64,000 nt of DNA from Anthoceros angustus. Its lineage: Eukaryota > Plantae > Anthocerotophyta. The stretch lies in NCBI GenBank assembly GCA_010909165.1, contig VJWM01000209.1, positions 1 to 64,000 on the forward strand, written 5' to 3'. Within the stretch, counting starts at the first letter, position 1. Each line of letters opens with the position of its first letter. Made by a program: the position numbers and the translations under genes. The notes below the pieces were generated by a model, which was given only the letters and a program-made list of their open reading frames with translations, ran no database searches and was not told the DNA's origin. This document shows positions 25,558 to 50,205 of the stretch, piece after piece.

Positions 25558-26974
25558 CCCTTAGCTCGGGAGGTTGCTGTATCTTGGTTTGGGTCTTCAT
25601 CTTCAAGGTTGAAGAAATCTGCAGTAATAGGATCTTCATTCACAGTCGAAGTGCCCTCAACTGTAAAGCTCCAAATATCAATAGACCCTGGAGTGCCACA
25701 AAATTTTTGGTTTGTGCCCAAGAAGAAGTCCATCTGCTCAAAAAAGGGCCAAGAGCCTGGTGTCCCCTTGATACATGCTTTACCTTTTCTCCTTCATCGT
25801 ATTTCTTCTTCAGCGCCTCTACTTTACCTTTTGCATAACGTCGGTCCAAGTACAGTATGGTGAAACCAGGCTGCAAATTTCATGCGAATGCTTCACCTCC
25901 AAATTGCCATTGTTCACTTTGAAATATTTCTCTTCAACATCAAAATTAGTTTTTGGGTGCCTTCATCTGTTCAAGTCGTCTTCTCCAAACCAACCTGCTG
26001 GCTGCATTATTCCACATGACCGTGGGAAAAATCTGCGCCGTAATGCAAAAGATCCGCCATGGCTTCCTTTTCAAGGCTAGCTAGGGCGCAACGTGACTTG
26101 GTATGGCTTTGTGAATCTCAATGTGTATTATTTAATACAATACATAACATCTTGGGGCGACCAATATGCACCCGGGATGAAGCACGAGTGAGGGCAATGT
26201 ATGCCGTAAACACTTCGACTATGAGGTCTACCCGTAGTCGTAGTGGGGAATACTATATAAAGGCACAACATCTTTTTATAAACTAGCTAGGCTGGTCAAT
26301 CTACGCAGTGAAAAGGGCAAAACGAACAGCAGCTTGGTTATTCTATGTGAATAGGCCATCAGTTTCGCAGTTACAAGCAAACCACTTCACGATCACATTT
26401 ACTTCCTGATTAAGTATATTTCCTGCTGGTCCTAATTAAGTATAGTGAATGAATCACCACCGTTTGTGAATAAAGTTGAACTTCAAGTTTCTTTAGGCTC
26501 TGTCTCCTAAGGCTCTATCTCTTTAGGCTGTGTTAAAGAAACATTTGTGAATGGTGTTTCAAAAAACTAGACAATATCGTTGAAGTAAACACGTAGTGTG
26601 GTTTTTTTAATACAAAATATGCTCAAATAAACCAAATAATATGGTGGAAAAACATGTATATTTTATTTTCGAAAACACATATTTTTGAAGAAACATGGAT
26701 TGGGATTTATGAAATTTAAAAGACAGCTTGAAGACATACTTGAACAAACATACATTATGTTGTAAAAACATGTATAGTGTTTGAGGAAACAAGCATTGTG
26801 TTTCAAAAACCATAAAAGAATTGCTTGAAGAAACATTATAGTTAGAAGAAATATTACATTTTTCAAGTCTTGCCATTGTGCAATGTAAAATTGATGTTGG
26901 GTATAGGCATGTAAATCCTCTATGTCACTGCAAAAGAAAGGACTGAAGATTCAAGCTAGGATGCTTGAACGTGG

Positions 26975-27190
26975 CTTACCGTGCTGAATTGGTGCCATTA
27001 ATTTCAACTTAAATGAAGGAGAAGGCATAGCAATCTCAGCACACTTAGCACAACCTGGATGAAGGAATTACACCAACTACTTGTTGTACTTGCACCTGGT
27101 GCAAGTGCTAAGACTCCAGCTCAATCCATTTTCGTTGTCATCTCCATTCAAGTGTGTGACCACGCAGGAATTGGCGCGCACAAAGCTGAT
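26975..27190 (-). pseudogene. Possible relic exon with an RPA70-C-like C4 zinc ribbon (copy 2 at ~46640-46850)
   Basis: The minus frame reads WSLSTCTRCKYNK*LV*FLHPGCAKCAEIAMPSPSFKLKLM, which is Cx2Cx13Cx2C with two stops, followed by a GTAAG donor. Confidence 0.3.
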
Positions 27191-27476
27191 AACGGGCTTA
27201 TCACGGGCCCGGGAAGTAGAGCATTTAAATATGATTTACGAAACAGGAACACCAAAAGTGAAGCATGGATAAATGAAAACCGTTTTGGTTTTAAAACCGC
27301 ACGCGACACAGGTACAGTATTCACATGGATGCGAGTCTTCATCGTACATGCCACATGCACGGACATGGAGGCAACGACCGTATACGGACCGCATACGGGA
27401 TGGAGGTGCACAGGCTGCCCGGATGGTCGGGCCAATCTGCTTTTAAAGAATTCCTTGCAGCGCTGCTACTGGGGGG

Positions 27477-27600
27477 AGGGACTGCAGCTGCCTCTGCGTG
27501 CTTGAAATGCATTCCAGTCATTGAAAGTATCGCAGGGGCAGTCACGGACGTGGTATTGGTTGTGGGGATTGGAGTGGCGCTTGCAGCTACGAGAGGATGA
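27477..27600 (+). pseudogene. Relic 5' fragment of an older P450 paralog (copy 2 at ~47148-47271)
   Basis: TGCAGCTGCCTCTGC...ACG GAC GTG GTA TTG GTT GTG GGG ATT GGA GTG GCG CTT GCA (TDVVLVVGIGVALA) parallels 27706-27811 (MEVTLGVEIGVALA). Confidence 0.75.
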
Positions 27601-27770
27601 GCTGGTCGCACGCCTCAACTTGCCTTCACACTTCACAGCATTGATGCTGAGCATTGTGTGACCTCCACAGCTCATGAAGCTGAGCATTGTGTGAAGTGGG
27701 AGGGAGTGCAGCTGCCTCTGCCTCTGCATTCTTGAGTTGAATGCCGTTGTTGAAATAATCGGAGGCAGCC

Positions 27771-30006
27771 ATGGAAGTGACATTGGGTGTGGAGATTGGA
27801 GTGGCGCTTGCAATTGCGGTGCTAGCTGTGGCCTGGCCAGTGTGGAGGTACTGGGAGCGGAGGGGATGTGGGCGCCCAAGGGCTCAAGCAGCTGCCGGGG
27901 ACCATGGGCTTCCCCTGCTGGGAGAGACGATGGAGCTGCTGGGCTACTTCAAGGTCGGGGATCCGGAGACATTCACGGCCAAGCGCTTTCGCAAGTATGG
28001 CGATGTGTTCAAGTCGCACCGTGTTAGGAGTCCGTATGTGTTTTCACGGGCGCCGAGGCGGCCAAGCTCTTGCTCTCAATGGAGCACAAGCTGGTACAGG
28101 CGCACCAGTTCCTCCCGCGAGGCAGTTGGTGGGCAAGGAGTCGCTCCTCAATGTGCACGGCCCCACGCACAAGTTCTATCGCAAAATTCTCAACGAATCC
28201 TTCATGGGCGAAGGCATTAGGAAGTATCTGCCGGTGTCGGAGCAATCGGCTCTAGAGACCCTCAGTTCCTGGAAACTGGGCGACGTCCCCGTCATGAGAC
28301 ACGACATGGCCAAGGTGCGTGCACCAGGAATGGGCCACTCTTACCGTTTGTCTGCAATCTAATTGCAATGTTTGTGCAGAGCTCGTGATGTTTGCTAACT
28401 GGTAGTTGCTGACGGTGCGCAGTTCGCTTATCATGTGATCGCGGGACTGGTGCTGAGCTGGGGTCCTGGTTCAGTGCGTGACAGGAGCTTGGAGCTCACC
28501 GAAACAGTGAGTACCAGCTTGATCACGGTGCCCATCAATCTTCCTGGATTCGCCTTTCACAAGGCCATGCAGGTGGAATTCATTCAGGCCCAATTTGGAG
28601 CACAGGTGTCCAATTTCTCCCAGGGCTTGCAATGGGCAATAAATCTAACAGTGCAAGTGGACTGGGCGTGCAGGCAAGAAAGGAGCTGGGTAAAATGTTC
28701 GACACCGAATTTGCGCTGAGAAGGAGCGGAAAATTTGTTCGCAGCGACCTGCTGAACGAAATGATGAAGGCAGTCGACCCCGATTCTTCAAGCGACAAGC
28801 CTGCCCTGGACGACGAGCAGCTGAGGGACAATGTGCTCACCATGATCGTTGCTGGCTTTGAGACCACCACCAACACACTCACCTGGCTTGCCAAGCTGCT
28901 GCATGAGAATCCCAGCGTCAAGGAGAAGCTGCTGGTGAGCCTGGCCCTGGGGATATATCAAGACGTCGTCCATAGGAATCGAAATTGGTTTGGAACAGCT
29001 TGGATCCAAGCGAGCCCACCTTGTTGTTTGGTTTTCTGTCTGTTTAACTGTAGGCTGAGCATTTGGCTCTGAGAAGAAACAAACAAGCTGGAGAGGCACT
29101 GACATGGGCGGATCTCGGCCAACCGATGGCCTACACCTTGAAAGTGAGACTCGAATCCCTCAACATCCTCCAACCTAGTAGTAGCCCAATACTCACTGGA
29201 ATCTGGCGTAAGCTAAGATCCATCTGTCTTGTCTCCTGTGTGCATGCAGGTGATCAACGAGGCACTCCGAGTGTCTTCTATCGCTTTCTGGTTGCATCGA
29301 CAGGTCAAGGAGGACTTTACATTCAACGGTATGTATGCTGCACCTGGCATTGGCAACCGTAAATATTCCTTCCCTACTCCAAGCGGGGAGTCCTAACATG
29401 GGTCCTTTCTCGCTACCTGACACGCATGTGCCACCTGCAGGATACCACATTCCTAAAGGCTGGAACTTTGTGCTCGACACTCAAAACTTGCACCATAGTC
29501 CAGACATCTTCCAAGACCCAGAGATCTTCAATCCCTCTCGCTTCGATGTAAGAGCCTGATGCTTGAATTCAACACTAGAATCATTACAGACGTCCGAATC
29601 ATAGACAACGAACAACATCTTGGGAGTTATCTTGTGACACTGCGTTCTGATGCTACCAACAGGTGCCACCGAAGCCCTTCACCCTGCTGCCGTGGGAGGT
29701 GGAAGCAGATTGTGCCTTGGGAAGGAGCTGGCACTAATGAACATGAAAGTGATGTTGCATCACATGATGCTTAAATTCAGGTGAGTCCCCATAATTCTTC
29801 TGCAATAGCTCACAAGTCATTTACAGTGCCCCTCTCTACATGTACTTCTTTGCTAACCGATGGGTGCCGACCCGTGTTGAAACAGGTGGACAGTAGACAA
29901 GCCAGACACTGGCCTAGTCGTTTCAGGTCTGCCATACCCCAAAACCGGTGTCCCCATACGCATCGAGGCTGTCCAGGACTACTCGTCTGCCAACCGAGCT
30001 ATGTAA
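27771..30006 (+). CDS. Cytochrome P450, CYP85 clan (CYP707/716/720-like), 8 exons, copy 1
   Basis: N-terminal anchor; LPGTMGFPLLGET; KYGDVFKSH; I-helix AGFETT; K-helix EALR; FNPSRF; heme motif W(G)GGSRLCLG. GT-AG exons: 27771-28314, 28423-28572, 28674-28934, 29054-29143, 29250-29328, 29441-29547, 29663-29780, 29886-30006. The 1-bp frameshifts fall mostly in homopolymers. Confidence 0.93.
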
Positions 30007-30542
30007 TACATCAGAGCTTGGCGTAAACCTTGGGATAAAGTGATCCTGCCGTCGAAGGTTATGGGTCCGACAAGGTCTCCAACTGTAGTGCTTCAATATT
30101 TTATCCAGTGGGTTTTAGTAAAAGGTGAGGTAGGACGTCTGGGACTATGGATCTTTCTGACAGTCCATTCCAGTTTTAGCAAAGGTGAGGTACGGACGTC
30201 TGCGTCCTCTGGCAGTCCCATTGCTGTCGCACGTTTCGACGGCACTGTATTCAGAAAAGTTGGAGATTCTTTGAGAAAAAGCTGCAGCATCTGCTTGCGA
30301 CTTGACAAGTTCATACTTCATACTGGAGTCAGCAATGTGCGAAAGCAGGAGGGATTGCTGCAGCATGGCATTCTTGAAATTGCATTCCGTCCTTCAAAGA
30401 ATCGCAGGGCAGCCATGGACGTGACGAGGGGCCTAACACGCGTATGATCAATCCTGCGTGGCGAGGAGATGACCAATTTGCTAATGTATCTGAAATATCT
30501 CCATGTATCTCAAATACGTGCAGAGATCCAGCCGCGTGCTAC

Positions 30543-32142
30543 GCTTAGCCGTAGAAATCAGGTGGCCAGGTGCGGGGCCCGCTGACATTGGTGTACTTCA
30601 TGGTCATGTCTCGCACATTGCCATTAACATCCATGACGTAGAGATCGTCTATACGGTCCAGCAATTCACCGGCCACCGGCCGGGGTCCTTGTCCGAGGCA
30701 TTTTTGTCTTTTGGTTTGTATATGATTACACTTGTCTAGCATGAAGTCATCGCAGATGCTTTGGTTTAGTGGTCGGATCAGCCCCCTGCACCGAAGCGAT
30801 CCCGGTCTTAATCCGTCTAGTCTGCATTTTGTGTGTCGGACACCCTTATGTCTAGTTTGCATTTTGTGTGTCGGACACCCTATGTCTGGACGCGATAACC
30901 CTTGTTGGGTTTGGCGTCACCAGGTTGCCCTTGTTGGGTCCCTTGTTGGTTGTTGCCCTTGTTGGGTCCCTTGTTGGGTTTGGCGTCACCCGGGTTGCCC
31001 TTGTTGGGTCTGGCGTGACCCGGGTTGCCCGCGGCATACAGAGGTATATACATATGAATGCATACAGAGGTATATACATATTCATATGGCAGATTGAGAG
31101 GGTATGGACTACATGGTCCTGGGTTGCCGGTGGCATACAGAGGTATATACATATGAATGCATATAGAGGTATATACATATTCTGCCATAGGACCGATGCA
31201 AAGCCGAGAGGCATGAGGCCGGCATGCGGGCATGCCTCTCTTTCTTTCCGGCGTCTCCCTTTCCGGCAACGGGGCGTCCGTCGTCGCTCCTCTCAACGGC
31301 TCCTTCCACCCTCCTCTCAACGGCTCCCGTCCGCGCTCCTTTCAACGCCGTCCAACGCCGTCCTTCCGCACCTGCTCACTCGTATGTGGTCCCAACTTGT
31401 TCCCACATCCCCTATTCTCGTTCCTAATGCGCTCCAAAACGAACGTTTCAAGTATCATAACCCACTTCTAATGCGGCTCAGTTCAGAGGGAAGCTTGACG
31501 GGTACGATCGAGCAAGCAAGCGGTAGTCTCTCCAATATCGTGATGTCAGCGGAATGGAACATTTGCCTCACACTCACTCAAGTGCAGACACCGGAGCCCG
31601 GCATCTTCACCAAGGAGCCTCACACTCAAGTGCAGACACCGGAGCCCGGCATCTTCACCAAGGAGCATTTGTCATGGGCTGTGGGCGATCATCGAGGGAA
31701 GATCAAAATGCACATGAATGTGAAGCGCGCTTACATTCCTTCTGACCGTGTAGGTGATTTTATTGCAGGTGAGAAAACATAATCTATTACAGTATGTTCA
31801 AAATGAACAGGACAGTGGGAGTTCGTGATCGAGTGCTTGGTGAAGAGGTTGAGACCCGAGACAGTTGAGACCCGAGACGGGTGACCATGAGAGGAGCGCG
31901 GACGGAGCCGTTAAGAGGAGCGACGACGGATGCCCCGTTGCCGGAAAGGGAGACGCCAGAAAGAAAGAGAGGCATGCCCGCATGTCGGCCTCATGCCTCT
32001 CGGCTTTGCATCGGGGTGCGTGGCCACACGGGCGATACGAATGGCAGGGCTCATTAAGTTTGCGTAAGCCTTAGGCGACGGGGGTCATGCACGAGGGAGT
32101 CAGCGGGCCCCGCACCTGGCCACCTGATTTTCACGTCTAGCC
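30543..32142 (+). mobile_element. Non-autonomous Mutator-like element (MULE): 44-bp TIRs, 9-bp TSD GCGTGCTAC
   Basis: Perfect 32-bp inverted repeat at 30555-30586 and 32099-32130, plus 12 imperfect outer bases on each side. GCGTGCTAC flanks it at 30534-30542 and 32143-32151. Confidence 0.85.
31543..31782 (+). pseudogene. N-terminal fragment of a MULE/SWIM zinc-finger protein (At4g13970/At1g60560-like); copy 2 at 51193-51429
   Basis: MSAEWNICLTL..VQTPEPGIFTKEHLSW...AYIPSDRVGDFIAGE resembles my recollection of the family N-terminus (W..I.SLPVQNP...F...DL.W...ALIPY.RVDDF..GE). It contains an internal 45-bp duplication. Confidence 0.65.
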
Positions 32143-32931
32143 GCGTGCTACTGTCTCTGAAATATATGCGGAGCTCGAGCCGCGTGCCAACGTGTTCTAG
32201 ACTCTGAAATTATGTGCCGAGCTCCAACCGCGTGCCGAAGAATTTGACATATGTGCGGAGGTACAGCCGCGTGGGCCGGGTCTCTTATTATTTAAACCCG
32301 CACAGTTCCTGCAGATGCTCGTATAAATGTGAGGCCCGCAAATCTGAGGCCCGCTTTTTACTGACCGGCGGTTGCGTCCCATGTATGAAATTCACCAGCC
32401 TGCTTGTCTGCTGCCTCGCGTCGCTAGCCCCGGCGAACATCGCATGTTTCGAGGGGTGAGGCCTGTCAGTCTTGGGCTGGTCAGGCGTCGTCTCTCGTCA
32501 GCCTCTCGACGCTCTGACATGCCTGGTAATGCCACTGGAGGCCACAAGTTTTTGCGACCCCCGGTGGATGTAAAACCAAAATCACGAGTCTGTCCAATGC
32601 CCATCACCCACGCATACACCGGCGGTCGAATGTGACAAAAGTTTTCAACTACGATTCGGCCAGGGTCACTTTGACTTGTCGTACGAAAAAGCGTTTCATG
32701 ACATCACGAGGACGTAAAAGCGTCCAGTGTCAGTGAAGTGCAGCTTGCGTGCATGTAATACAGAATTCTGTGTGTAAGGTAACGTACAAGTGAAGCTTGC
32801 ATGCCTTGTAGACTTTGGGCCATAATATTATAGAAGTCATAGAATACCCCGTCCCTTAGGCTATAATGCCCCGCCGTTTAATCATTCCGGCGAAGTCAGT
32901 TGTGTTGCCCAAGTGCTCACGGTCATCAGGA

Positions 32932-35900
32932 ATGGCTGCAGCGACTGTCACAAGAGCAGCAGCTGCAGCTGCTTCTCCGACCAGCTCAAGGTGGTGTCCG
33001 CAACGCCAACGCGGAGTGGCCAAGATACTCGGGGGGAGCATCGATATCGTCCAGTCGATCAAGAGAAGTAGAGGATGCAAGGCTTCCAAGGCGGCACATG
33101 TCGAGGCTTGGCAGGTGCATGCGTCCGCTGCGCATGGGCTTGGGCCGCTGCAAGCTCAGGCCACAGATTTACAAGCTGCAGAGCGCGAAGTGGAGGTGCT
33201 GGAGCGGCTGTGCTTCCGGATGATCGATATGATCCGGATGCAGATGCGGATGCGGAGATCCAGGAGTCGATCCGAAGCATCCAGAGTATGCTGCGGTCAC
33301 TCGGGGACAGGGCCATCTCCGGAGCCCTACGACGCGGCCTGGGTGGCCATGGTGCCGGCGGCGGGCGGCGTCCGGGGCCGCACTTCCCGAGGCGCTGGAG
33401 TGGGTGGTGCGTTCGCAGCTGCCGGAAGGCTGCTGGGCGGGCGACGCGCACCTCTTTAACGTCTACGATCGCCTGGTGGCGACTCTGGCGTGCGTGGTAG
33501 CGCTGCGAACATGGAGCGTGCATCCCGATGCCGTGCGGAAAGGGTGCGCCTTCATCCGGCAGCATATGCACCACGTGGATTCCGAGAACCACATCCACAG
33601 AACCGTGGGGTTCGAGATGGTGTTCCCGGCTATGCTGGAGCGGGCGAGCGCGCTGGAGCTGGATCTGCCGTACGACGCGCCCGCAACCAGCACCCTTCTG
33701 CGGGAGCGGGAGCGCAAGCTGAAGCAGATTCCGGTGGAGTTGGTGCAGTCGCAGCCCACGACGCTGCTGGCGTCGCTGGAAGGGATGGACGCCCTGAAGG
33801 GCTTCGACTGGGACAAGATCCGGAGGCTGCAGTCGCCGGCGGGCCACATGCTCACCTCTCCGGCCTCCACCGCCTGCTTGTACATGCACACCGGGGACAG
33901 CAAGGCGCTGCAGTACCTCACCCTGCTGGTGGAGACGACGGGGTGTTATCCCCAACCACTCGCCTGTCGACATCTTCGAGCGGCTGTGGATCGTGGACAG
34001 GCTGCAGCGTCTGGGTATCGCGCGCTACTTCAAGCCCGAGATCAAGGACATCCTGGACTTCGCCTTCCAGCGGTGGACGGAACGGGGCCTGAGCTGGGCC
34101 ACCGATTGCAATGTCACCGACCTGGACGACACCAGCATGGGCTTTCGCTTGCTGCGCCAGCATGGCTATCCTGTCTCTGCAGGTGCCCTCTGTACACTCA
34201 CGCATGTATCTTGGCATCCTTGGGCTTGCTCCCGCTTATCACACTTGTGGTGACTGTGTCTGTCTACTACTCATGTGATGCAGATGTGTTCAAGGCATTC
34301 TGCAAGGAGACCACTTCTCGTGCTGGGTCGACCACGGGTGCGACCTGGACACCGATGTCACCCCATGTTCAATCTGCACCGCGCGTCCGAGATGCGCTTC
34401 CCACACGAGGACTTGCTGGACAAGGCCTGGGAGTACACGCGCTTTCATCTGGGAGAAACAGCGACAGCCGCAGCTGTCGGACAGGTGGGTTGTGTCCAAA
34501 GATCTCCGAGGAGAGCTGGAGTACGCTTTGAGCTGCCCTGGTACGCCAGTATGCCTCGCTTTGAGACCAGGGCTTATATCGACCACTACGGCCCTGGCGA
34601 CGTGTGGATCGCCAAGAGCCTCTACAGGTGAGTACCTTCCGTCTCACATCGCTTTCACGCATTGGCGAGCTCCTGACAGCTGAGAAATCAATTGGGCATC
34701 CATGTAACTGCATCCATCTCTTTCCAAATTGTACAGGATGTATGGCGTCTGCAATTCAACATTCCTATCCCTTGCAAAAGCAGACTTCAACAAATTGCAA
34801 ACCATGTACCGCGCGGAGCTGGAGGCATTGAAGGAGTACGTGCAGTTCAAGTTTCCCATCATCCGATCCTCACTAATAGCCACAATGTCTGAAGAGGAAA
34901 GACTTAAGCTTGCCTATTAACTTCGCTTCCAATTCGCTCTGTGCACCGGTAGATGGGTATCAGAATGTCGCTTCGACCGTCTCCCATTTGCTCGCCACGA
35001 CAGGGTGATTCCAGGCTTCCGTGCGCGGCTGCCACCTCCTTCGAACCGGAGATGGCTGCGGTGCGCAGAGCCAGGACCCAACTCATGCTCCTGGCCACCA
35101 TACTCGACGATTACACCACCCTGTCAGGAGTTCCCCAGGACGAGCTCGACCGGTTCCAGGCTGCCACCAAAGGTACCGTTGCTAGCCGGTCATCCACTCG
35201 TAGCCATGCCACTGTCACTCGCCGACCGGACCGGCTGTCCTTCTCACTGCCTGCAATTGCTTGCTTCAACACATCTGTGTCCTTCTGCAGCTGGGACCCG
35301 TCCATGATCGACCACACCAACCACAGGCAGCGCATCGTTTTCATGGGCATCTTCGACACCATCGTCGAGATAGCCGACAAAGCATCCAAGGAGCAGGGCC
35401 GCGATGTCAGCAGGCATGTAATCGCATCGGTGAGTGACTTCTCTCTGGGGCTCTACTGTCCGCATCCCTAACAGCCTAGTGCATCCTCACTTGCTTGTTC
35501 AAGCATTGGCTCACCTACCCCCACGCGCAGTGGCAACGCTACGCCGAATGCGTGAGCATCCGAGCCAAGTGGAAGCGGAAGACATCATTCCCACCTGGAA
35601 CCAATTCATCCCAGTCGGCGCAATCTGCATCAGCGCGGAGCTCTGCAGTTTGGGACCTGGCTTCTTGATACCCGGTGTGGGGGTGAGCGAAGAGGCCATC
35701 AACTCGGAATACTACGACCTCCACATGAAGGTCTCAATTGTAGCGCGCCTCTTGAACGACCTCAGATCGTACCAGGTACGCTAATATGTAGTCAAGGTGA
35801 GGTTGCACATGTCTGATACATCACACAGCATACATGCATATGACCCGTCCCATGTCCAATCCTGGAATTGCCACAGAAGGGGATATCGGAAGTGAACAGT

Positions 35901-36157
35901 ATGGTTGTTCATATGAGAGAGTACCCGGAGAAGAGCGAGGAGGAAGCGGACCACGACATCCGAGCTATAGTGGAATCAACATGATACAGCTGGTGCAACA
36001 TGTCTTCACTCCATCGGCTGTGCCCACACCTGCAAACTCGTCTTTTGCACAATGCCATTGTCGCATATTACCTCTACGCAGACAACGACGGCTGGTCCTC
36101 CCCTCAGCCAAGATGCAGCACCACTTTAACCAGCTTCTTTTCAACCGTGTGATTTGA
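32932..36157 (+). CDS. Diterpene synthase (gamma-beta-alpha, class II DxDD active site, plastid transit peptide), 7 exons, copy 1
   Basis: Ala/Ser/Arg-rich transit peptide; SPYDAAWVA; QLPEGCW; DRLVATLACVVAL; VGFEMVFP; SLEG; SPASTA; VDRLQRLGI; DLDDTSMGFRLLR; DVWIAKSLYRM; RLLND. Introns at ~34183-34283, 34628-34737, 34835-34952, 35172-35290, 35430-35530 and 35776-35876. An upstream in-frame ATG exists at 32866. Confidence 0.95.
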
Positions 36158-36199
36158 TGTACTTCAGCCACCTCTATCAACTTCACTGCAGAAGTCGTT

Positions 36200-38580
36200 A
36201 CCACAAGTAGTAACCTAAGAAACCTGTGTACATTTTGGAAATCTCACAGTTCAGCAAGTGTGTGCGTGCAAACCCTTTCCTGCCAACCTCTTTTTCTGCA
36301 GACGGAACCATATTCCATGTGTAGCGTCCCACGCTACCTGCCCTGTACACCTGCACAAGTTCCTCCGCCACACGTGGCAAGCCACCATGTACCGACTCAG
36401 CGAGGATTTTCAACAGGCCTGACAAGGCCTGCATTTGCTCGTCCACCAAGCCTTCCATCTCCTGCATATCATAGAGGTTCCCTTGGAATGACCGATTTTT
36501 GCAGCCAGGGTGTGCCGGACATCTGGTACCCTGTCAGGCACAGCCTGCGAGTAATATATGTCACAAAAGTTTATCTGCAGTCGGGAACCATATCCCATGT
36601 GTAGCGTCCCAAGGTACCTGCTCTGTACACCTGCACAAGCTCCTGCGCCACACGTGGCGAGCCACCATGTACCAACGCAGCGAGCATTTTCAACAGGCCT
36701 GACAAGGCTTCATTTGGTTCCCGTTGAATGACCGATATGTTGCAGCCAGGGTGTGCCGGACATCTGATACCCTGTCAGGCACAGACTTCGAGTATATATA
36801 TGACACAATGTTATAATAGGGGAATGCACAAAAGTTTCCATCTCCCCCACACCTCATACCTCTGGACCATTAGGTTGCTCAGCATTACCATGCAGCTTCC
36901 AGCTCGAGTAGACATCACGCGCATTATTCAGTAACGAGGCAGTACCTTGCAATCCGCTCATCTCCTACCACGGACTCTTTTGTGGCTCCTGAAGAGCAGG
37001 CAGCAACATCAGCCAACAGAGTTTCAAGTGTTTCTAACAAAAGCACCGGGCCTGTAGGTGGTGGGGAGACTGTACCAGTCAATGACAGCTTCAACCTTGT
37101 CTCAACATCACGGATCTATTGTACCAGCAATCCAGGTGTGTCAAGCGCATAGATGCTTGGATGTCTACCAACTTGGCACGACGCATGTTACCCACCTATG
37201 TCAATTGCCAGCAGGCAAAGGCTATCACCACTCGCCTCAGGCTGGAAGATGATGACATATATCAAGTGCTGGTAAGGACATATCCCAGACCTGGGAGCCT
37301 GATCTGTTTCGGTGACTCCAGGCAGAGGTCCAAGTTTGCTTTTTCAAATGCTCCTGCAGTAGACAAAAGCTACGATCTCAGATAGACAAGGCTTGGCCTC
37401 CAAAGGCTCAATGACTCTCCTGATGCTATATGACTCTCATGTGCAACAAACAGCGCTAGCAACAAACAGTACCTGGAAACCCCGATCTTGTGAGCTGACC
37501 CATCTTGTTCAGAATAGCTGACTTGCGCACGCCCTGGCGACATCAGCAGCAAGGTGGGCTCTTTCACTGGCTCTCTTTCAGCCAATCCCTTGCTTTCACG
37601 CATCAGCGCCTGAAAGCTGAGAAATCAACAATCCATGTGACTGCATCCATCAAGGGTCCACCAAGCTTTCCATCTCCTGCAGGTCATCCAGGTTCCCATT
37701 GAATGACCGATATGTTGCAGCCAGGGTGTGCCGTACATCCGAGACCCTGCCAGGCACAGCCAGCGAGCATGACATATATCAAGTGCTGGTAAGGACATAT
37801 CCCAGACCTGGGAGCCTGATCTGTTTCGGGTGACTCCAGGCAGAGGTCCAAGTTTGCTTTTTTCAAATGCTCCTGCGGTAGACAAAAGCTACGATCTCAG
37901 ATAGACAAGGCTTGGCCTCCAAAGGCTCCAATGACTCTCCTGATGCTATATGACTCTCATGTGCAACAAACAGCGCTAGCAGCAAACAGTACCTGGAAAC
38001 CCCGATCTTGTGAGCTGACCCATCTTGTTCAGAATAGCTGACTTGCGCACGCCCTGGCGACATCAGCAGCAAGGTGGGCTCTTTCACTGGCCTCTTTCAG
38101 CCAATCCCTTGCTTTCACGCATCAGCGCCTGAAAGCTGAGAAATCAACAATCCATGTGACTGCATCCATCAAGGGTCCACCAAGCTTCCATCTCCTGCAG
38201 GTCATCCAGGTTCCCATTGAATGACCGATATGTTGCAGCCAGGGTGTGCCGTACATCCGAGACCCTGCCAGGCACAGCCAGCGAGCATGACATAATATTA
38301 GAGGAACAAGACTGAACGAAAGTTTCCATCTCCCCACACCAACTTGGAGAAGGCTTCATACCTTTGGACCGTCAGGTTGCTCAGCGTTCCCATCCAGCTT
38401 CCACCTTGAGTAAACATGGCGCGTATTGAGAAGCGAGAGCAAGTACCTCGCAATCCGCTCTTCTCCTACAACCGAGTCTTCTATGGTTCCTGAGGATTAA
38501 GCAGCAACATCAGCCAAATAGAGTTTCATATGGTTCTAACGATGACACCAGTCCTGTAGGTGGAGGGGAGGCTGCAATAC
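36200..38580 (-). pseudogene. Fragmented, internally repeated gene relic of unrecognised family (copy 2 at ~55820-57660)
   Basis: The peptide VPDRVxDVRHTLAA..FNGNLxDxQEME recurs at ~36500, 36740, 37720 and 38240. ETLLADVAA..ES.VG.ERIARY recurs at ~36950-37030 and ~38440-38520. Confidence 0.4.
37252..38293. repeat. ~518-bp tandem duplication present only in copy 1
   Basis: ATGACATA occurs at 37252, 37769 and 38287. There is a single unit in copy 2 (56861-57385). Confidence 0.9.
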
Positions 38581-38769
38581 CAGTCAACTACCATCTTTAG
38601 GGTGGAACACTAATCTTACCTGGCCCAAACAGGCAATGGCTAGCCAAGACCCTTATTAGGGCCTGCGGAGAGAGAGGCACATGTCTTCAGAGCTTCGTCA
38701 GGATAAGAACTTTGGGGGTTTCGAACCGACGCTGTAGAACATGGTTCCCATGGCCAGGCACAAAGCAAT

Positions 38770-39560
38770 TCATTGCAAGACGTAGCCAGTAGTAACCTAC
38801 GTCTCTGGACATGTTGATGAAGGACCTTCGAGTGAGGGTAAAACACTGCATCAGGGTGCTGGCTTCGCTTCCTGTCGACTCTTGCAAGGAGCGGGAATCT
38901 GCCATGGTGGACAAGGTATACCAGCATCCACAAAATGCTGATTCAACACGCGTACGGGACATCCAGTCACCACATGGAAATGACAGGAGCACGCATTCAA
39001 ATCGCGACGCCTGCTCCACCAATCTGATTATCCTCTACACGGCACCAACGTAGATCGTCCTGCAGAACTAGGTCGTTGAACAGCTCAAAGACTTCGCTGC
39101 TGGGCTGGTGAATAGAAGTGATGACAGTCCGTCCATCTGGAGCCAAATTCTTCAAGGTAGTCGTAACAAAGAAGGCTGCAGCACTGCAACAAGCCCACCT
39201 TCCATTTTAGCACTGAATGAGGAGTAGAAGCAACAAAAAAATAACTCCGAATGTGCACCATCCCCGCACACCTATCCAAGTCACTGATAGGCTCATCCAG
39301 ATGCAAAAAGCGAGGCTTGGTAAGCAGCTCCAAGGCAATGGTGACCCATCTCCTCTCACCTCCGCTCACCCCTCTGAGATGTTAATTCTCTATGGGCGTG
39401 TGCAAAGCTTACTGAAGACCCATTCCTCGATCGTGGTGTTAATGATCTCCATCTTCTGTGCCCTGGGCATCCTGACCGGAAGCCGGAAGAAAGCCGAGTA
39501 CACCATAGTCTCAAATACGGTGAGCGTCCCGGGCAAGTTGTCATTCTGCGTCACATAGGC
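38770..39560 (-). pseudogene. ABCG half-transporter (ABCG11/WBC-like) fragment, copy 1
   Basis: AYVTQNDNLPGTLTVFET; SGGERRWVTIALELLTKPRFLHLDEP; intron; [36 protein letters not shown]; [20 protein letters not shown]. Walker A and most of the TMD are not seen. Confidence 0.88.
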
Positions 39561-40049
39561 CTACAATCACAGCAGCGATGAGCTCCCGAAGTGACAGTAA
39601 CTGTCCCAGTCCCAGCCCCAAAACTCATTCCCACTTACCGCCACGCCGCACGACAGCCACTACTTGCTGCCATTGAGATAAATGTGCCCCGGGCGTCTGC
39701 CTCGCATTCTTGGCCAACCTCCTGCCCAAACGACATTAGATCCATCACACCGGTCACTTCCTGTGACGCGTTGTGCGAGATCAAGCCCTTCCCCAAGGAC
39801 TCAACAAAACTGTCACGTCCCACATGCCTGCCAGAGTGTCGAGAAGGGTTGATTTGCCGGAGCCAGAAGGCCCCATGATGTAGCACGTCATTCCTTATTT
39901 AGGCTTTCGTCTGTGACGCCTTCGTGTGATGATGGCATTGTACTTCTCGGTGTGGTGATGCCCGTCTGTGCTTCTTGGTGTGATCCTCCCCAAACGTCAA
40001 ACATTTTGAATCTGGTAATCGTCATCTCTCCAGGGAATCGAGACTTGTG

Positions 40050-40750
40050 ATGGTGATCCCAATTGCAACCGGAGGGGATCCGGAGTGTCACAGTGTGTGT
40101 GAGAGCAGCAGAGCCTCCGCGAAATTTGGCAGCCTTGAAACGGGTCTGCGCGATGTGGTAACCACCATGGTGGTTCCCGCCGGAGATCCAGAGAAGAAAT
40201 CGCACGAGAACGAAAGGTGTGAGATCCGTAGCCTGGATCAGCTCATCCCCAACGTGTACGTGCCCCTTCTCCTGCTGTTCGATAAAACCCCGAGATCGGG
40301 ATTGGCGGGACTGGTGGAGGAGCTCAAACAGTCGCTGGCTAGGGTGCTGGTGCTCTTCTATCCCATGGCGGGCAGGGTGGTGGAGAGGGCGGGCCAGCCG
40401 CCGCATCTGGTGTGCAACAATGCCGGTGCCGTCTTCACCTCCGCGCACGTGGACGCTCCCATGAGCCAAGTGTGTGGAGTCGGCATTCACTTCCAGCCGG
40501 TGCCACAAATCCAAGGGACATTGATGAGGCACAAAGTTGAGATTGCAGAGGCGGAGGTGGAGGTGGGAAGCAAGCCCTTGTGGTTCATGTAAGCCTCAGC
40601 CTCTGAGTGTTGTGCAAATGGAAATCTTCCATGGGTGCTGTGGAATTCAGGTGGCGGGGCTGCGGCATATGCATGCAGGTGACGGATTTGAGTGTGGAAT
40701 TCAGGTAGCGTGGCCCTGGCTGTCAGCTGGCTGCATGCCAGAGCATGGCA
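40050..40750 (+). pseudogene. BAHD acyltransferase, N-terminal half, truncated by a Copia LTR, copy 1
   Basis: SLDQL..VYVPLLLLF; LKQSLARVLVLFYPMAGR; LVCNNAGAVF; intron at the Q^VT position; FECG..VALAVSWLH. It breaks at the HxxxD motif, where the LTR starts. Confidence 0.88.
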
Positions 40751-43680
40751 TGACACGGAAGCGTAAAGAGGAAAGGCAGAAAAACAATTGAGAGTGAAAC
40801 AACCACGTCGAGGAGAACATATAAAAGTAGTTATAAAACCCAATCTAGGATACCTACTCATATGTCAGTAACCTAAGTAATAACTAAAAGTATTGTTCAA
40901 ACGTGCCCTAAGTAGGGCTCTAACTTGCACAATCTCAACACTCCCACTCACGTTTGGAACAACGTGAAATGAGACTAACAAGCTAACATGTCCAGTTCAC
41001 TCTTGATAAGAACATAAATGTATAGCAAGTTAACATATGATGAAGAAAAGCTCCCACTTATGAAGAACCACTTGATAAATCCACAAGGCCTAAAGCGGAA
41101 GAGAAATACTCATGCTTGGCCTTAGATAAACCTTTAGTAAATATATCGGCGAGGTTCTCCTCCGTGGGAACATACTCAATGGCGAGGTTCTCCTCCGTGG
41201 GAACATACTCAATAGCCACGTGATGCTTCGCAACTAATTGTCTTATAAAATGATGATGAACACCAATATGCTTAGTTCGAGCATGGTACTTGGCATTCTT
41301 AGTTAACGCTATTGCCGACATATTGTCACAATACAATAAAGTTGGTGAGCCTTGAACTTGATCCATCTCCGCTAATAAGGATCTTCCAGCTATAGCTTCC
41401 TTACCAGCTAGTGTCAAGGAAGCATACTCACTCTCAATTGAGCTGTCACAATACAATAAAGTTGGTGAGCCTTGAACTTGATCCATCTCCGCTAATAAGG
41501 ATCTTCCAGCTACAGCTTCCTTACCAGCTAGTGTCAAGGAAGCATACTCACTCTCAATTGAGCTAAGAGACACACTCTGTTGCTTCTTACATGTCCATGA
41601 AACAGCAGCACTACACATGGTGAAACAATAGCTAGATAAGCTTTTCCTTGTAACAGGATCAGCTGCCCAGTTGGCATCAGACCAACCCTGAAGTAGCAAC
41701 CTTCTTGTTCCAGATCTCTTGTACTGAAGCCCAACATACATAGTTCCATATAGGAAGCGATAGATGCGTTTTACCCAACCCAATGTGCTAAACCAGGATT
41801 AGAAAGGAATTGCGACACAATGGAAACAGCATGTGTGATGTCTGGACGAGTCCAACCACTAAGGAAAAGTAAACATCCTCGCTTCCTATAAGGTGTATGA
41901 AGCATCCTCTCATTCCTCGGTTGTAGTAAATCTTGAGTAGATAGGGTTTGCCCAATTTGCAAGTGGAGTGGCTGCGGGACATCTTTCTGCTTGAAGTGAT
42001 TAAGAAGCTCTTTAACATACTTAGATTGATAAATGCTAAGTGTACCTTCTTCCCTATTCCAGAAAACAATCGAACTCCAAGGCAATAAGTAAGAGTTCCA
42101 ATATCCTTCATCTTGTACTTGGAACTAAGAGTTGCCTTAACTTCTGATAAGAGGTCTTGGCTATTCGTAGCAATTATTATGTCATCCACATATAAAGCAA
42201 TAATAACAAGCTTCCCATCCTTGCGTAGGAAATATACATTCTCATCAGAATCTGACAAAGCCAATCTCTACAAGAGTGCCATCTATATCGACATACCACT
42301 TCAAAGGAGATTGTTTGAGTCAGTAAATACATTCAAAGTCGCAACTAAGTCTCTAGTTTTAGGATCTACAAACCCTTGGGTTGCTCCATATAAATAAGCT
42401 CCTCTAATTTACCATATAGAAAAGCAAAGGTAACATCCATTTGTTGTAGATCTAAATCTAACTCATTGCTAATGCTAACAAGTATCTAATTGTCTCCAAC
42501 TTAACAAGCGTGAAAAGGTCTCATGATAATCTACTCCGGGAACTTGACTATATCCCTTAGCACACAAACGTGCCTTGTAACGTTCTACACTACCATCAGC
42601 TTTCAATTTGATACGAAATACCCACTTACATTGAATTGGTTTCCTACCATAAGGGAGCTTAACTAATTCCCAAGTATTATTCTCTATCAAACTATTATAT
42701 TCGGATAATATAGCTGCCTCCCACTTCTCCTTATCCGGTCCAGATAATGCCTCTTCACGTGTAGCAGGTTCAATAAGATTAGTAGCTGCTATGTAGGCTT
42801 GGACTAATGAGGCAGAGGCAGGAGTTAATGAGTTCACATCTAAATTGGGTTCATTTCTCAAATTAGATAAAGGGGCAGCTAAAGAATTATTATTTTGGGT
42901 GTTGGAAATGGTTGGTGCAGAAACGGGCGCTGAAACAGGATCTACGGATGAGACTTGGGCAGATTCTATGTGCAAAGAGGCATCGGTGGTCACGGGATCA
43001 GATGTGTGCCAAGATGCGGCCTGGACATCCTCCCAGATGCTCTTGCGCACCTCGGTGATACGGCTCAAGCCAGGCTGGAGATCTACGCGTCCTTGTGGAG
43101 CGACGCGCGGCAGGCGCTGCTGGATCGGGAGGAGGCTTGTAGCTGGGGTTGCACTGTGATGGTGCCAGGAGATGTGCAAGGTGAGGCAAGCGCCCTATTG
43201 GATCGGTGACTGCAGCTGATTTTGCTTTCTGGGAGGCCTGCAGGCAGGTTTCTAGACACTGTGGGAGCAAGTGCTGCAGGATATGATGGCTGATTTGGCA
43301 GCTGTAAGGCAGTGCGGTACCTTGTTGGGCGGCCCTTGTCGGGTGTGTGCGGTGCGCTCCCACTGTCCCAGTCCCACTCGGACGTGCTGGTCATCAGCTC
43401 CCACTCATCTGCAAGGTCGAGTCAAAGGAGCAACCTTGCACATGTCTGCTGGTTCGACGATAATGGATGGTGCTCCTCCAATTCTCTCCCTCGGTGGGCA
43501 GAGATTGCTCAATAACAACACTCCTGAATACATGATCCGCGAGTCTCGGGGTTCACCTTGTATCCCTTTATGCCTTGATTATATCCCACAAACAGCATCT
43601 TGTTGGCCTTAGCATCGAGCTTCTGACGAAGTTGTTTGGATATATGAGCATATGCAGTGCTCAAAATCTGAAGATGCGAA
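40751..43680 (-). mobile_element. 5'-truncated Ty1/Copia element (INT C-terminus, RT, RH, PPT, 190-bp 3' LTR at 40751-40940), copy 1
   Basis: KLDAKA..GIKGY; [31 protein letters not shown]; LYVDDII; SDANWA; HARTKHI; ADIFTK. PPT GTGAGTGGGAG is followed by TGTTGAG...GTGTCA. Confidence 0.95.
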
Positions 43681-44009
43681 ATGGGGTTTGAGTCCTAACG
43701 TCTCTCGGCATAGGGTTATTCTCCATTAAAGAGGTTTGGGTCCCTAAAGACCAAAAATGACCCCAGGCCAAAAATGCATCATCTTTAGCAAAACCACTCT
43801 TTAGACATGTCTTTGAAGACATTGACCATGTTATTTTCTCGTGAATACTTACGCTAACAGGTTAAGCGAAGAAGGTTTTGATTTCACCTTCACAAGGAAG
43901 GGATTTCAAGGATTTTAACGGTGCTAGGAATCCTAAACACCTCTTTCGCAGTATAGTACTTCCTAGTAGGGTGAACAGTAGGCAAACCAAACAAAACTAG
44001 TCCAGCAAG

Positions 44010-44830: not shown

Positions 44831-47438
44831 TGTTGATTTTAGTGGTTTGAAAATTTGTAAATCATCCGGTATCTAGGCGTAAAGTCATGAATATTATTTT
44901 TGAAAATCATTTGTTGGTTGATGTTATATTCTCACATTAGCTTTTCTTGATGTCACCGTGACGGTGACATCAAAATTTAAGAATATTGACTCTCATCTGC
45001 ATGCGCGTGGGTCGAGAGAGGATGGAAAGGGCTCCAAAGGCGGGGCGGAGGGCGCCATCGCCTCCTCGTCTGGACCTCAATTCTTCATCCTCTCGCGATT
45101 TTCCTCACTTCACAAAATTAGAAAATCCGACATGAAAGCCATACTTCTTATCACAATTGTGCTCATGGGAAGGATCAAAAAATATGGCTCGATACCATAT
45201 CGAGTTGTGTGGATTGTGGGTGAGAGCACGCAGGGAGGCGAGAGTGCACGAGGCCGAGGCGGCGGTAGTTATCGTTATGATCAAAGAAAAAAATAAAAAG
45301 AGTATATATGAGTATTTAGGTATTTAATTAAGTATATAACCTGATTATGAAACTAACCTAAACTAACATAATTTCCTTTAAGCTCGGGAGGTTGCTGTAT
45401 CTTGGTTTGGGTCTTCATCTTCAAGGTTGAAGAAATCTGCAGTAATAGGATCTTCATTCACAGTCGAAGTGCACTCAACTGTAAAGCTCCAAATATCAAC
45501 AGACCCTGGAGTGCCACAAAATTTTTGGTTTGTGCCCAAGAAGAAGTCCATCTGCTCAAAAAAGGGCCAAGAGCACAGTGTCCCCTTGATACATGCTTTT
45601 CTCCTTCATCGATTTCTTCTCTACAGTGCTAATCCAAGTGCATGGTGAAACCAGTGCATTTCTTCTTCACCTCAATTGCCATTGTTCTTTGAAATATTTC
45701 TCTTCATTTGGTCGCCTTCTCCACATGACACGTGGAAAAATCTGCCGTAATGCAAAGATCCGCCATGGCTTCCTTTTCAAGGCTAGCTAGGGCATAGCGT
45801 GACAGTATGGCTTTGTGAATCTCAATGTGTATTATACATAACATCTTGGGGCTAATATGCACCCGGGATGAAGCAGTGAGGGGCAATGTGCAGTAAACAC
45901 TTGACTACGAGGTCTACCGTAGTCGTAGTGGGGAATACTATATAAAGGCACAACATCTTTTTATAAACTAGCTAGGCTGGTCAATCTACGCAGTGAAAAG
46001 GGCAACGAAAGCAAAACGACTTGGTTATTCTATGTGAATAGGCCATCAGTGCATTACAAGCAAACCACTTCACGATCACATTTACTTCCCGATTAAGTAT
46101 ATTTCCTGGTCCTAATTAAGTATAGTGAATGAATCACCGTTTGTGAATAAAGTTGAACTTCAAGTTTCTTTGGGCTCGCTCCTAAGGCTCTATCTCTTTA
46201 GGGCGTTAAAGAAACATTTGTGAATGGTGTTTCAAAAACTAGACAATATCGTTGAAGTAAACACGTAGTGTGGTTTTTAATACAAAATATGCTCAAATAA
46301 ACCAAATAATATGGTGGAAAAACATGTATTTTATTTTCGAACATATATTTTTGAAGAAACATGGATTGGGATTTATGAAATTTAAAAAGACAGCTTGAAG
46401 ACATACTTGAACAAACATACATTATGTTGTAAAAACATGTATAGTGTTTGAGAAACAAGCATTGTGTTTCAAAAACCATAAAAGAATTGCTTGAAGAAAC
46501 ATTATAGTTAGAAGAAATATTACATTTTTCAAGTCTTGCCATTGTGCAATGTAAAATTGATGTTGGGTATAGGCATGTAAATCCTCTATGTCACTGCAAA
46601 GAAAGGACTGAAGATTCAAGCTAGGATGCTTGAACGTGGCTTACCATGAATTGGTGCCATTAATTTCAACAAATGAAGGAGAAGGCATAGCAATCTCAGC
46701 ACACTTAGCACAACCTGGATGAAGGAATTACACCAACTACTTGTTGTACTTGCACCTGGTGAAAGTGCTGAGAACTCAGCTCAATCCATTTTCGTTGTCA
46801 TCTCCATTCAAGTGTGTGACCACGCAGGAATTGGCGCGCACAAAGCTGATAACGGGCTTATCACGGGCCCGGGAAGTAGAGCATTTAAATATGATTTACG
46901 AAACAGGAAACACCAAAAGTGAAGCTTGGATAAATGAAAACCGTTTTGGTTTTAAAACCGCACGCGACACAGGTACAGTATTCACATGGATGCGAGTCTT
47001 CATCGTACATGCCACATGCACGGACATGGAGGCAACGACCGTATACTGACCGCATACGGGATGGAGGTGGGGCCGACGGAGGCTGCCCGGATGGTCGGGC
47101 CAATCTGTTTTTTTTAAAGAATTCCTTGCAGCGCTGCTACTGGGGGGAGGGACTGCAGCTGCCTCTGCGTGCTTGAAATGCATTCCAGTCACTGAAAGTA
47201 TCGCAGGGGCAGCCACGGACGTGGTATTGGTTGTGGGGATTGGAGTGGCGCTTGCAGCTACGAGAGGATGAGCTGGTCGCACGCCTCAACGCCTTCACAC
47301 TTCACAGCATTGGCTGAGCATTGTGTGACCTCCACAGCTCATGAAGCTGAGCATTGTGTGAAGTGGGAGGAGTGCAGCTGCCTCTGCCTCTGCATTCTTG
47401 AGGTTGAATGCCGTTGTTGAAATAATCGGAGGGCAGCC

Positions 47439-49666
47439 ATGGAAGTGACATTGGGTGTGGAGATTGGAGTGGCGCTTGCAATTGCGGTGCTAGCTGTGGC
47501 CTGGCCAGTGTGGAGGTACTGGGAGCGGAGGGGATGTGGGCGCCCAAGGGCTCAAGCAGCTGCCGGGGACCATGGCTTCCCCTGCTGGGAGAGACGATGG
47601 AGCTGCTGGGCTACTTCAAGGTCGGGGATCCGAGACATTCACGGCCAAGCGCTTTCGCAAGTATGGCGATGTGTTCAAGTCACGTGTTAGGAGTCCGTAT
47701 GTGTTTTCACGGGCGCCGAGGCGGCCAAGCTCTTGCTCTCAATGGAGCACAAGCTGGTACAGGCGCACCAGTTCCTCCCCACGAGGCAGCTGGTGGGCAA
47801 GGAGTCGCTCCTCAATGTACACGGCCCCACGCACAAGTTCTATCGCAAAATTCTCAACGAATCCTTCATGGGCGAAGGCATTAGGAAGTATCTGCCGGTG
47901 TCGGAGCAATCGGCTCTAGAGACCCTCAGTTCCTGGAACTGGGCGACGTCCCTGTCATGAGACACGACATGGGCAAGGTGCGTGCAAGGAATGGGCCACT
48001 CTTACCGTTTGTCTGCAATCTAATTGCAATGTTTGTGCAGAGCTCGTGATGTTTGCTAACTGGTAGTTGCTGACGGTGCGCAGTTCGCTTATCATGTGAT
48101 CGTGGGACTGGTGCTGAGCTGGGGTCCTGGTTCAGTGCGTGACAGGAGCTTGGAGCTCACCGAAACAGTGAGTACCAGCTTGATCACGGTGCCCATCAAT
48201 CTTCCTGGATTCGCCTTCACAAGGCCATGCAGGTGGGAATTCGTTCCAGGCCCAATTTGGAGCACAGGTGTCCAATTTCTCCCAGGGCTTGCAATGGGCG
48301 CAATAAATCTAACAGTGCAAGTGGACTGGGCGTGCAGGCAAGAAAGGAGCTGGGTAAAATGTTCGACACCGAATTTGCGCTGAGAAGGAGCGGAAAATTT
48401 GTTCGCAGCGACCTGCTGAAATGATGAAGGCAGTCGACCCCGATTCTTCAAGCGACAAGCCTGCCCTGGACGACGAGCAGCTGAGGGACAATGTGCTCAC
48501 CATGATCGTTGCTGGCTCTGAGACCACCACCAACACACTCACCTGGCTTGCCAAACTGCATGAGAATCCCAGCGTCAAGGAGAAGCTGCTGGTGAGCCTG
48601 GCCCTGGGGATATATCAAGACGTCGTCCATAGGAATCGAAATTGGTTTGGAACAGCTTGGATCCAAGCGAGCCCCACCTTGTTGTTTGGTTTTTCTGTCT
48701 GTTTAACTGTAGGCTGAGCATTTGGCTCTGAGAAGAAACAAACAAGCTGGAGAGCACTGACATGGGCGGATCTCGGCCAACCGATGGCCTACACCTTGAA
48801 AGTGAGACTCGAATCCCTCAACATCCTCCAACCTAGTAGTGGCCCAATACTCACTGGAATCTGGCGCAAGCTAAGATCCATCTGTCTTGTCTCCTGTGTG
48901 CATGCAGGTGATCAACGAGGCACTGAGTGTCTTCTATCGCTTTCTGTGGTTGCATCGACAGGTCAAGGAGGACTTTACATTCAACGGTATGTATGCTGCA
49001 CCTGGCATTGGCAACCGTAAATATTCCTTCCCTACTCCAAGCGGGAGTCCTAACATGGGTCCTTTCTCACTACCTGACACGCATGTGCCACCTGCAGGAT
49101 ACCACATTCCTAAAGGCTGGAACTTTGTGCTCGACACTCAAAACTTGCACCATAGTCCAGACATCTTCCAAGACCCAGAGATCTTCAATCCCTCTCGCTT
49201 CGATGTAAGAGCCTGATCCTTGAATTCAACACTAGAATCATTACAGACGTCTCCGAATCATAGACAACGAACAACATCTTGGGAGTTATCTTGTGACACT
49301 GCGTTCTGATGCTACCAACAGGTGCCACTGAAGCCCTTCACCCTGCTGCCGTGGGAGGTGGAAGCAGATTGTGCCTTGGGAAGGAGCTGGCACTAATGAA
49401 CATGAAAGTGATGTTGCATCACATGATGCTTAAATTCAGGTGAGTCCCCATAATTCTTCTGCAATAGCTCACAAGTCATTTACAGTGCCTCTCTACATGT
49501 ATACTTCTTTGCTAACCGATGGGTGCCGACCCCGTGTTGAAACAGGTGGACAGTAGACAAGCCAGACACTGGCCTAGTCGTTTCGGGTCTGCCATACCCC
49601 AAAACCGGTGTCCCCATACGCATCGAGGCTGTCCAGGACTACTCGTCTGCCAACCGAGCTATGTAA
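47439..49666 (+). CDS. Cytochrome P450, CYP85 clan, 8 exons, copy 2
   Basis: Collinear with copy 1. The I-helix reads AGSETT; heme motif and splice sites are the same; scattered 1-bp indels. Confidence 0.92.
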
Positions 49667-50205
49667 TACATCAGAGCTTGGCGTAAACCTTGGGATAAAG
49701 TGATCCTGCCGTCGAAGGTTATGGGTCCGACAAGGTCTCCAACTGTAGTGCTTCAATATTTTATCCAGTGGGTTTTATTAAAAGGTGAGGTAGGACGTCT
49801 GGGACTATGGATCTTTCTGACAGTCCATTCCAGTTTTAGCAAAAGGTGAGGTACGGACGTCTGCGTCCCTCTGGCAGTCCCATTGCTGTCGCACGTTTCG
49901 ACGGCACTGTATTCAGAAAAGTTGGAGATTCTTTGAGAAAAGAGCTGCAGCATCTGCTTGCGACTTGACAAGTTCATACTTCATACTGGAGTCAGCAATG
50001 TGCGAAAGCAGGAGGGATTGCTGCAGCATGGCATTCTTGAAATTGCATTCCGTCCTTCAAAGAATCGCAGGGCAGCCATGGACGTGACGAGGGGCCTAAC
50101 ACGCGTATGATCAATCCTGCGTGGCGAGGAGATGACCAATTTGCTAATGTATCTGAAATATCTCCATGTATCTCAAATACGTGCAGAGATCCAGCCGCGT
50201 GCTAC

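Follow-up and report, generated by a model that had tools for sequence, protein, structure and literature searches.

Gibberellin-type ent-copalyl diphosphate synthases (ent-CPSs) use a His-Asn pair, recognizable as the motifs LHS and PNV, to ligate the water that serves as their catalytic base (PMC11795633, PMC9945934). What does a class II diterpene cyclase make when these motifs read LAS and PNH? The question is raised by a 64,000-nucleotide stretch of Anthoceros angustus DNA (contig VJWM01000209.1, positions 1 to 64,000; hereafter the window), which carries two copies of such a gene, and in particular by positions 33755-33995, which lie on the + strand within the long first exon of the first copy (copy A). 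We find the motif set to be transcribed and maintained by purifying selection; for this reason, the product of the family is probably not the hormone precursor.

Both copies encode PTTLLASLEG and GVIPNHSPVDIFERLW. In copy A, positions 33755-33943 are translated as PTTLLASLEGMDALKGF...QYLTLLVETTG and positions 33936-34181 as (RR)GVIPNHSPVDIFERLWIVDRLQRLGIARYF...TDLDDTSMGFRLL; the reading from 33936 continues as (RR)GVIPNHSPVDIFERLWIVDRLQRLGIARYF...NVTDLDDTSMGFRLLRQHGYPVSA to the GT splice donor of the first exon at 34183. The LAS motif (ctg gcg tcg) occupies 33767-33775 and the PNH motif (ccc aac cac) 33951-33959, both on the + strand, with counterparts in the second copy (copy B) at 53388-53396 and 53572-53580. 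Copy B possesses identical motif DNA at 53376-53405 and 53563-53802, and each exact motif DNA pattern occurs twice in the window against an expectation of zero from shuffled sequence. To place the residues, we aligned exon pieces against all chains of the PDB with phmmer; all searches reported here used single exon pieces of the gene, each separately. PTTLLASLEGM aligned with PTTLLHSLEGM of AtCPS and with PTTLLYSLEGL of AgAS, the abietaenol/abietadiene synthase of Abies grandis, while GVIPNHSPVD aligned with GGVPNVFPVD and VPCHYPLD, respectively. The Ala codon at 33770-33772 stands where AtCPS has its catalytic His263 and AgAS has Tyr287, the Asn corresponds to AtCPS N322 and AgAS C347, and the His to AtCPS V323 and AgAS H348. 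A first-pass annotation made from the letters alone had proposed that LAS and PNH are present in both copies, with Ala at the His position and both Asn and His in the second motif; the translations and the exact DNA patterns bear out the former, and the alignment with AtCPS and AgAS that it had called for gives the same placement. Compared with gibberellin-type ent-CPSs, the Asn of PNV is kept but PNH is read, and LAS stands in place of LHS in both copies and in a related contig described below. Compared with the conifer and lycophyte type that forms (+)-copalyl diphosphate ((+)-CPP) and combines LYS with PCH, the His is present, in PNH, but the Tyr position is occupied by Ala.

The gene itself is a three-domain (gamma-beta-alpha) diterpene synthase, delineated from open reading frame (ORF) pieces, PDB matches and Pfam. 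Copy A (32866-36157, + strand) comprises approximately seven GC-rich exons (32866-34182, 34284-34627, 34737-34835, 34953-35172, 35291-35429, 35531-35775 and 35877-36157) separated by introns of roughly 100 bases. Four GT..AG introns (34183-34283, 34836-34952, 35430-35530 and 35776-35876) are absent from RNA-like contigs of the same organism, and the remaining two (34628-34736 and 35173-35290) were assigned from the sequence and the related contig only. AtCPS was the best PDB match for both exon pieces (E 8e-46 and 2e-30), followed by AgAS, OsCPS4 (rice syn-CPS), SmMDS (Selaginella miltiradiene synthase) and GrTPS2 (Grindelia 7,13-CPP synthase); for the first exon piece the E values against these five lay between 1e-39 and 1e-46. 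Together with a PF01397 match (E 4e-23), this fold homology places the gene among class II diterpene cyclases, and the alpha domain gave only weak PF03936/PF19086 matches. Copy B (52490-55777, + strand; blastn of the window against itself, and ORFs) lies 19,621 bases from copy A within a tandem duplicated block of about 19.6 kb, whose arms span 26011-44000 and 45720-62960 and which showed 97.4% identity over 11.8 kb in the blastn self-comparison. Judged from sequence, the window probably contains a tandem pair of near-identical genes for a class II cyclase of the TPS-c type that is specific to one lineage, probably the hornworts.

As the region contains many small indel errors, we asked whether LAS/PNH might be a sequencing or assembly artefact hiding a true LHS/PNV. 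The first-pass annotation had held that its reading would fall if polishing restored these motifs. Four sets of contigs bear on the issue: DNA contigs from the same organism (X1, depth about 30); RNA-like contigs of a public run of the same organism, in which introns are spliced out (X2); contigs of a second organism, organism B (X3 and X8); and a 3,887-base Logan contig from another public run (L001), on which the protein P0002 is predicted. Logan contigs drop minority variants. X2 contigs near-identical to the window (0-1 mismatch) were found, one of which (record 9; 33325-33773, 1 mismatch) extends to the Ala codon, and a further X2 contig (403 bases, depth 38.5, 93.5% identical) represents an expressed paralog with TTGGVIPNH in frame. 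The site is also covered by organism B contigs, and in one loose end S-T-L-L precedes GC, with which an Ala codon begins. L001, which unlike the window copies is clean within exons, reads PTTLLASLEG, LVESTGGVIPNHSPVDIFERLW and DLDD, and further on MADDYTTLSG; in L001/P0002 taken together, PTTLLASLEG, GGVIPNHSPVDIFERLW, DLDD and DDYTT are all in frame. None of these data restore LHS/PNV: the same LAS/PNH codons recur in both copies, RNA contigs, organism B and L001. Moreover, a change from Ala (GCG) to His or from His (CAC) to Val requires substitutions and not indels, and an artefact of this kind can be considered extremely improbable.

Comparison of the window with L001 over 257 aligned codons gave a nonsynonymous rate (dN) of 0.093 and a synonymous rate (dS) of 0.425, and the resulting dN/dS of 0.22 indicates purifying selection on the lineage. 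An exhaustive HMMER search of a library of 1.84 billion representative proteins yielded P0002 (78% identical) as the single close relative. When the best 150 representatives were tabulated at the three motif positions by pairwise alignment, only P0002 combined Ala at the His position with an intact DxDD, and PNH was likewise confined to it. The next most similar proteins were at most 49% identical to the window piece; those looked up were from ferns, conifers, lycophytes and angiosperms, and among them the annotated ent-CPSs have LHS/PNV. A word search with residues 60-345 of P0002 returned no further family member among proteins of up to about 780 amino acids (next match 49%). One with the 177-amino-acid exon piece returned a single fragment of unrelated length, a result that the length filter deprives of any weight as to absence. 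A literature search pairing PNH with copalyl synthases found no relevant paper. In every family member seen, the Ala and the His are kept together. The same organism also possesses a paralog with the canonical second motif (AVPNVYPVDL, PNV), seen in loose ends of X1 and X2 at 33975 and apparently expressed, which is presumably the CPS or bifunctional CPS/ent-kaurene synthase (CPS/KS) of the hormone pathway.

A complication is that in neither copy do the LAS and PNH motifs share a reading frame: LLVETTG belongs to the frame of 33404 and GVIPNH to that of 33936. The shift falls at a run of four G (33940-33943 on the + strand; identical in copy B at 53561-53564), which is two bases shorter than in relatives reading TTGGVIPNH or STGGVIPNH in frame. 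At this site the expressed paralog carries GG inserted behind 33939, organism B (loose ends at 33940) reads AGC ACA GGG GGT GTT, and L001/P0002 reads LVESTGGVIPNH (STGGV) in frame. The window copies might then be pseudogenes, in which a genuine two-base shortening of the G run predates the duplication and working members reside elsewhere in the genome. The break is common to both copies, the X1 contigs lack the insertion and match the window with the same four G at a depth of about 30, which on its face indicates a real deletion, and the sole RNA contig across the G run belongs to the paralog. X1 may, however, share homopolymer under-calls, because it also lacks a C at 34535 that is present in copy B, in organism B and in the RNA contig with the copy A variant (G at 34476). 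With a depth of about 30, compared with 7.4 for the paralog, it seems to represent about four copies collapsed into one. Further evidence against pseudogenes comes from the RNA contigs, in which the reading frame is regained at 34305, 34360 and 34535 (the contig carrying the copy A variant) and at 33371 and 33385 (another one). Each copy is a string of frame-shifted ORF pieces. Within the gene, copies A and B differ by 33 substitutions and 29 small indels; the latter fall mostly in short homopolymers and at sites that differ between the copies. The 11.8 kb self-alignment contains 150 gap openings but only 69 mismatches. A dN/dS of 0.22 speaks against long decay as well.

Across the whole window, G/C runs of at least 5 occur about half as often as expected from the ratios between shorter runs, 2-to-3 and 3-to-4 (234 runs of 4, 24 of 5). 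This depletion counts against a genuine deletion at the G run and is consistent with systematic homopolymer under-calling, and the poor polishing of the region was probably caused by short reads mapping ambiguously to the copies. With an assembly so full of small indels here, we lean towards assembly error; a real break in these two copies seems unlikely to us, and pseudogene status for them is doubtful to the same degree. The latter would be compatible with either of the product hypotheses considered below, and members of the family that carry these motifs are intact and expressed whether or not the break in the window is real.

We then examined the remaining active-site motifs. The class II acid motif DLDD (DxDD) is intact at 34119-34130 on the + strand and in copy B, aligns with DIDD of AtCPS, marks the gene as a class II cyclase, and is preceded 8 residues upstream by a conserved Trp (SWAT). 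All seven aromatic positions listed for the active site of gibberellin (GA)-type CPSs (PMC12410513) are occupied: DIFERLW supplies the F and W, SWAT another W, and the others lie in FSCW (Phe to Trp), DRW and WIAKSLY. With the exception of the base motifs, the class II site resembles that of an ent-CPS. In the FERLW motif (33975-33989, + strand), the alignment shows the active-site Phe and Trp kept, but the regulatory His of FEHxW (AtCPS H331), which is linked to inhibition by geranylgeranyl diphosphate (GGPP) and Mg in hormone CPSs (motif definitions in PMC9169658 and PMC12410513), is replaced by Arg, so that the gibberellin-type form of this motif is absent. Neither metal-binding motif expected of a bifunctional CPS/KS or class I enzyme (DDxxD and NSE/DTE) was found in canonical form. 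DDYTT (35106-35120, + strand) takes the place of DDxxD with the third Asp lost, and MADDYTTLSG is likewise in frame in L001 (about 3290-3330). The second motif, NDLRSYQ|KG, is split by an intron (35755-35882, + strand); its expected terminal Glu is apparently Gly, a less certain reading given the assembly indels. From these two degenerate motifs, class I activity of the alpha domain is probably lost or weak.

The enzyme is probably dedicated to specialized rather than hormone metabolism, to judge by its residues and setting. The first-pass annotation had claimed that it is not a gibberellin/kaurene enzyme; the Arg of FERLW, DDYTT, the tandem amplification next to a P450 gene and the canonical PNV paralog all support this, and the step from motif to product stays a prediction. 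Its proposal of a hydroxylated, rearranged or stereochemically different product is partly supported in direction and is too broadly drawn to amount to a specific one.

The literature permits a narrower proposal. In line with what the annotation had stated about the LHS/PNV dyad (AtCPS H263/N322), about water capture upon His-to-Ala exchange and about LYS and PCH in conifer (+)-CPP enzymes, Ala in place of either dyad residue efficiently yields 8-hydroxy-ent-CPP, also called ent-LPP and obtained with AtCPS H263A, and in the conifer enzymes Tyr and His form a direct hydrogen bond, loss of either partner giving an 8-hydroxy product (PMC11795633, PMC9945934). Replacing the His with Ala "invariably" led to a hydroxylated product in GA-type ent-CPSs across land plants (PMC9945934), whereas Phe or Tyr in place of this His leads to ent-kolavenyl diphosphate (ent-KPP) (PMC11795633, PMC9945934). 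For a moss enzyme with a natural Asn-to-Ser change a hydroxylated intermediate was inferred, and the same study describes a hornwort ent-CPS with LHS/PNV as well as hornwort and liverwort TPS-c enzymes making kolavenyl diphosphate (Jia et al. 2022, PMC9169658). The table of characterized diterpene synthases in supplement S2 of PMC10813164 was left aside, as its rows for Jia et al. 2022 are apparently scrambled: the columns for species and product disagree with the enzyme names, and Marchantia gene names stand under Phaeoceros. It is unsuited as a source for hornwort functions. For the window enzyme, we envisage that DLDD would protonate GGPP and that an ent-CPS-like bicyclization would give the labda-13-en-8-yl cation. 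As position 263 lacks a His or Tyr side chain, the base water would be unclamped in an enlarged pocket, and this freed water, aided by the Asn and the new neighboring His, could add to C8. The product would be 8-hydroxy-labd-13-en-15-yl diphosphate, most likely in the ent form (ent-LPP) because the pocket is ent-CPS-like.

How firmly can such a product be predicted from motifs? The chance that the main product is something other than ent-CPP appears about even to us, and 8-hydroxy-CPP specifically is put forward tentatively, at somewhat less than that. Several points weigh against water capture by the window enzyme. The frame break is found in both copies and left uncorrected by X1; stereochemistry is not readable from sequence; LHS/PNV is not required for ent-CPP, as other cyclases use alternative bases (PMC11795633, PMC12410513); by analogy with AgAS H348, the extra His could restore a base; and one review, in a limited search, turned up no hornwort labdane-type diterpenoid (PMC13364417). 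The rival reading is a relocated base. The new His follows the Asn by one residue and takes the place of AgAS H348, a residue with a side chain that touches the one aligned to the Ala (PMC11795633), making it possible that the His and Asn hold a water, or that the His itself deprotonates, in replacement of His263. A non-hydroxylated CPP would then be made, be it ent-CPP, another stereoisomer or a double-bond isomer, and the family would merely be a CPP source for specialized metabolism. Reviews do report ent-CPP from alternative catalytic bases (PMC11795633, PMC9945934, PMC12410513), and the joint conservation of Ala and His in all family members seen is what a compensating pair would be expected to show. 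However, it is the Tyr hydroxyl of AgAS that is modeled as the base, and the His alone is not known to be sufficient (PMC13142921); removing this hydroxyl by a Y-to-F change leads to water capture despite the His (PMC11795633); and Ala at the His position gave a hydroxylated product in every phytohormone-pathway CPS tested (PMC9945934). We consider a relocated base rather unlikely, and favor water capture over it. A protein named as a fern levopimaradiene synthase with PHH (P0058) was considered as a precedent for a His-only base and set aside, since the alignment at its first motif is poor and the name given to it questionable.

Comparison with the closest known enzymes puts the proposed water capture in context. 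Like AtCPS (PDB 3PYA/3PYB/4LIX), the window gene keeps DxDD and Asn322 as well as all seven aromatic positions of the active site, and its Ala is the same change as in the engineered H263A variant giving ent-LPP (PMC11795633). In contrast to AtCPS, the Ala is natural, V323 is His, H331 is Arg, an alpha domain is kept in which the class I motifs have partly decayed, and identity is only about 47-50%. With AgAS (PDB 3S9V) the gene shares the His at H348 (PxH), three domains and FERLW with Arg; AgAS, however, combines LYS with PCH and makes normal (+)-CPP, whereas in the window gene the Tyr partner is Ala and Cys347 is Asn as in ent-CPSs. AgAS is also a TPS-d3 enzyme with a working class I site, while the window gene is TPS-c-like. 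The moss isoabienol synthase OlIAS offers a natural bryophyte TPS-c in which a small residue has entered the ancestral dyad (Asn to Ser), and its product is inferred to be a hydroxylated derivative of CPP (PMC9169658); compared by description only, OlIAS differs in keeping the His, with the other half of the dyad changed, and in being active as a class I enzyme (PMC9169658). Hornwort PcCPS and the bifunctional kolavenyl diphosphate TPS-c enzymes of hornworts and liverworts belong to the same plant lineage and subfamily (PMC9169658), and neofunctionalization of hornwort TPS-c genes is shown by the enzymes of that study. PcCPS, though, keeps LHS/PNV, and the monofunctional OpKOS and other ent-KPP synthases have Tyr (OpKOS) or Phe/Tyr at the His position where the window gene has Ala (PMC9169658).

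Upstream of the synthase by about 4 kb, on the same strand and inside the duplicated block, lies a cytochrome P450 gene (27771-29500, + strand, with a copy at about 47400-49100), recognized from ORFs and a PF00067 match on 28632-28940 (E 1e-10). Its N-terminus resembles the CYP85 clan when judged by eye. The encoded P450 could decorate an 8-hydroxy product. Between the P450 and the synthase, near-identical ORF translations occur on opposite strands (31232-31471, +; 31787-31975, -), which points to an inverted repeat with arms of about 200 bases each, perhaps left by a small transposon.

What is new here is the LAS/PNH variant; the enzyme family is well studied, and variation of its catalytic base already drives product diversity. 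It is conceivable, if rather doubtful on motif evidence, that hornworts evolved a natural counterpart of the H263A switch, in which tandem, P450-linked cyclases with an Ala/Asn-His site capture water to give 8-hydroxy-ent-CPP for a hornwort-specific labdane pathway. In land plants and bacteria alike, the His-Asn dyad serves to predict hormone-pathway ent-CPSs, and a conserved natural Ala with a new His beside the Asn provides a direct test of this rule. Either nature uses the single-residue water-capture route found by mutagenesis, or a relocated His rescues deprotonation, and both outcomes inform how the position of the base sets the product of a class II cyclase. The variant would also indicate hitherto undescribed hornwort diterpenoid chemistry, encoded by a gene amplified together with a P450.

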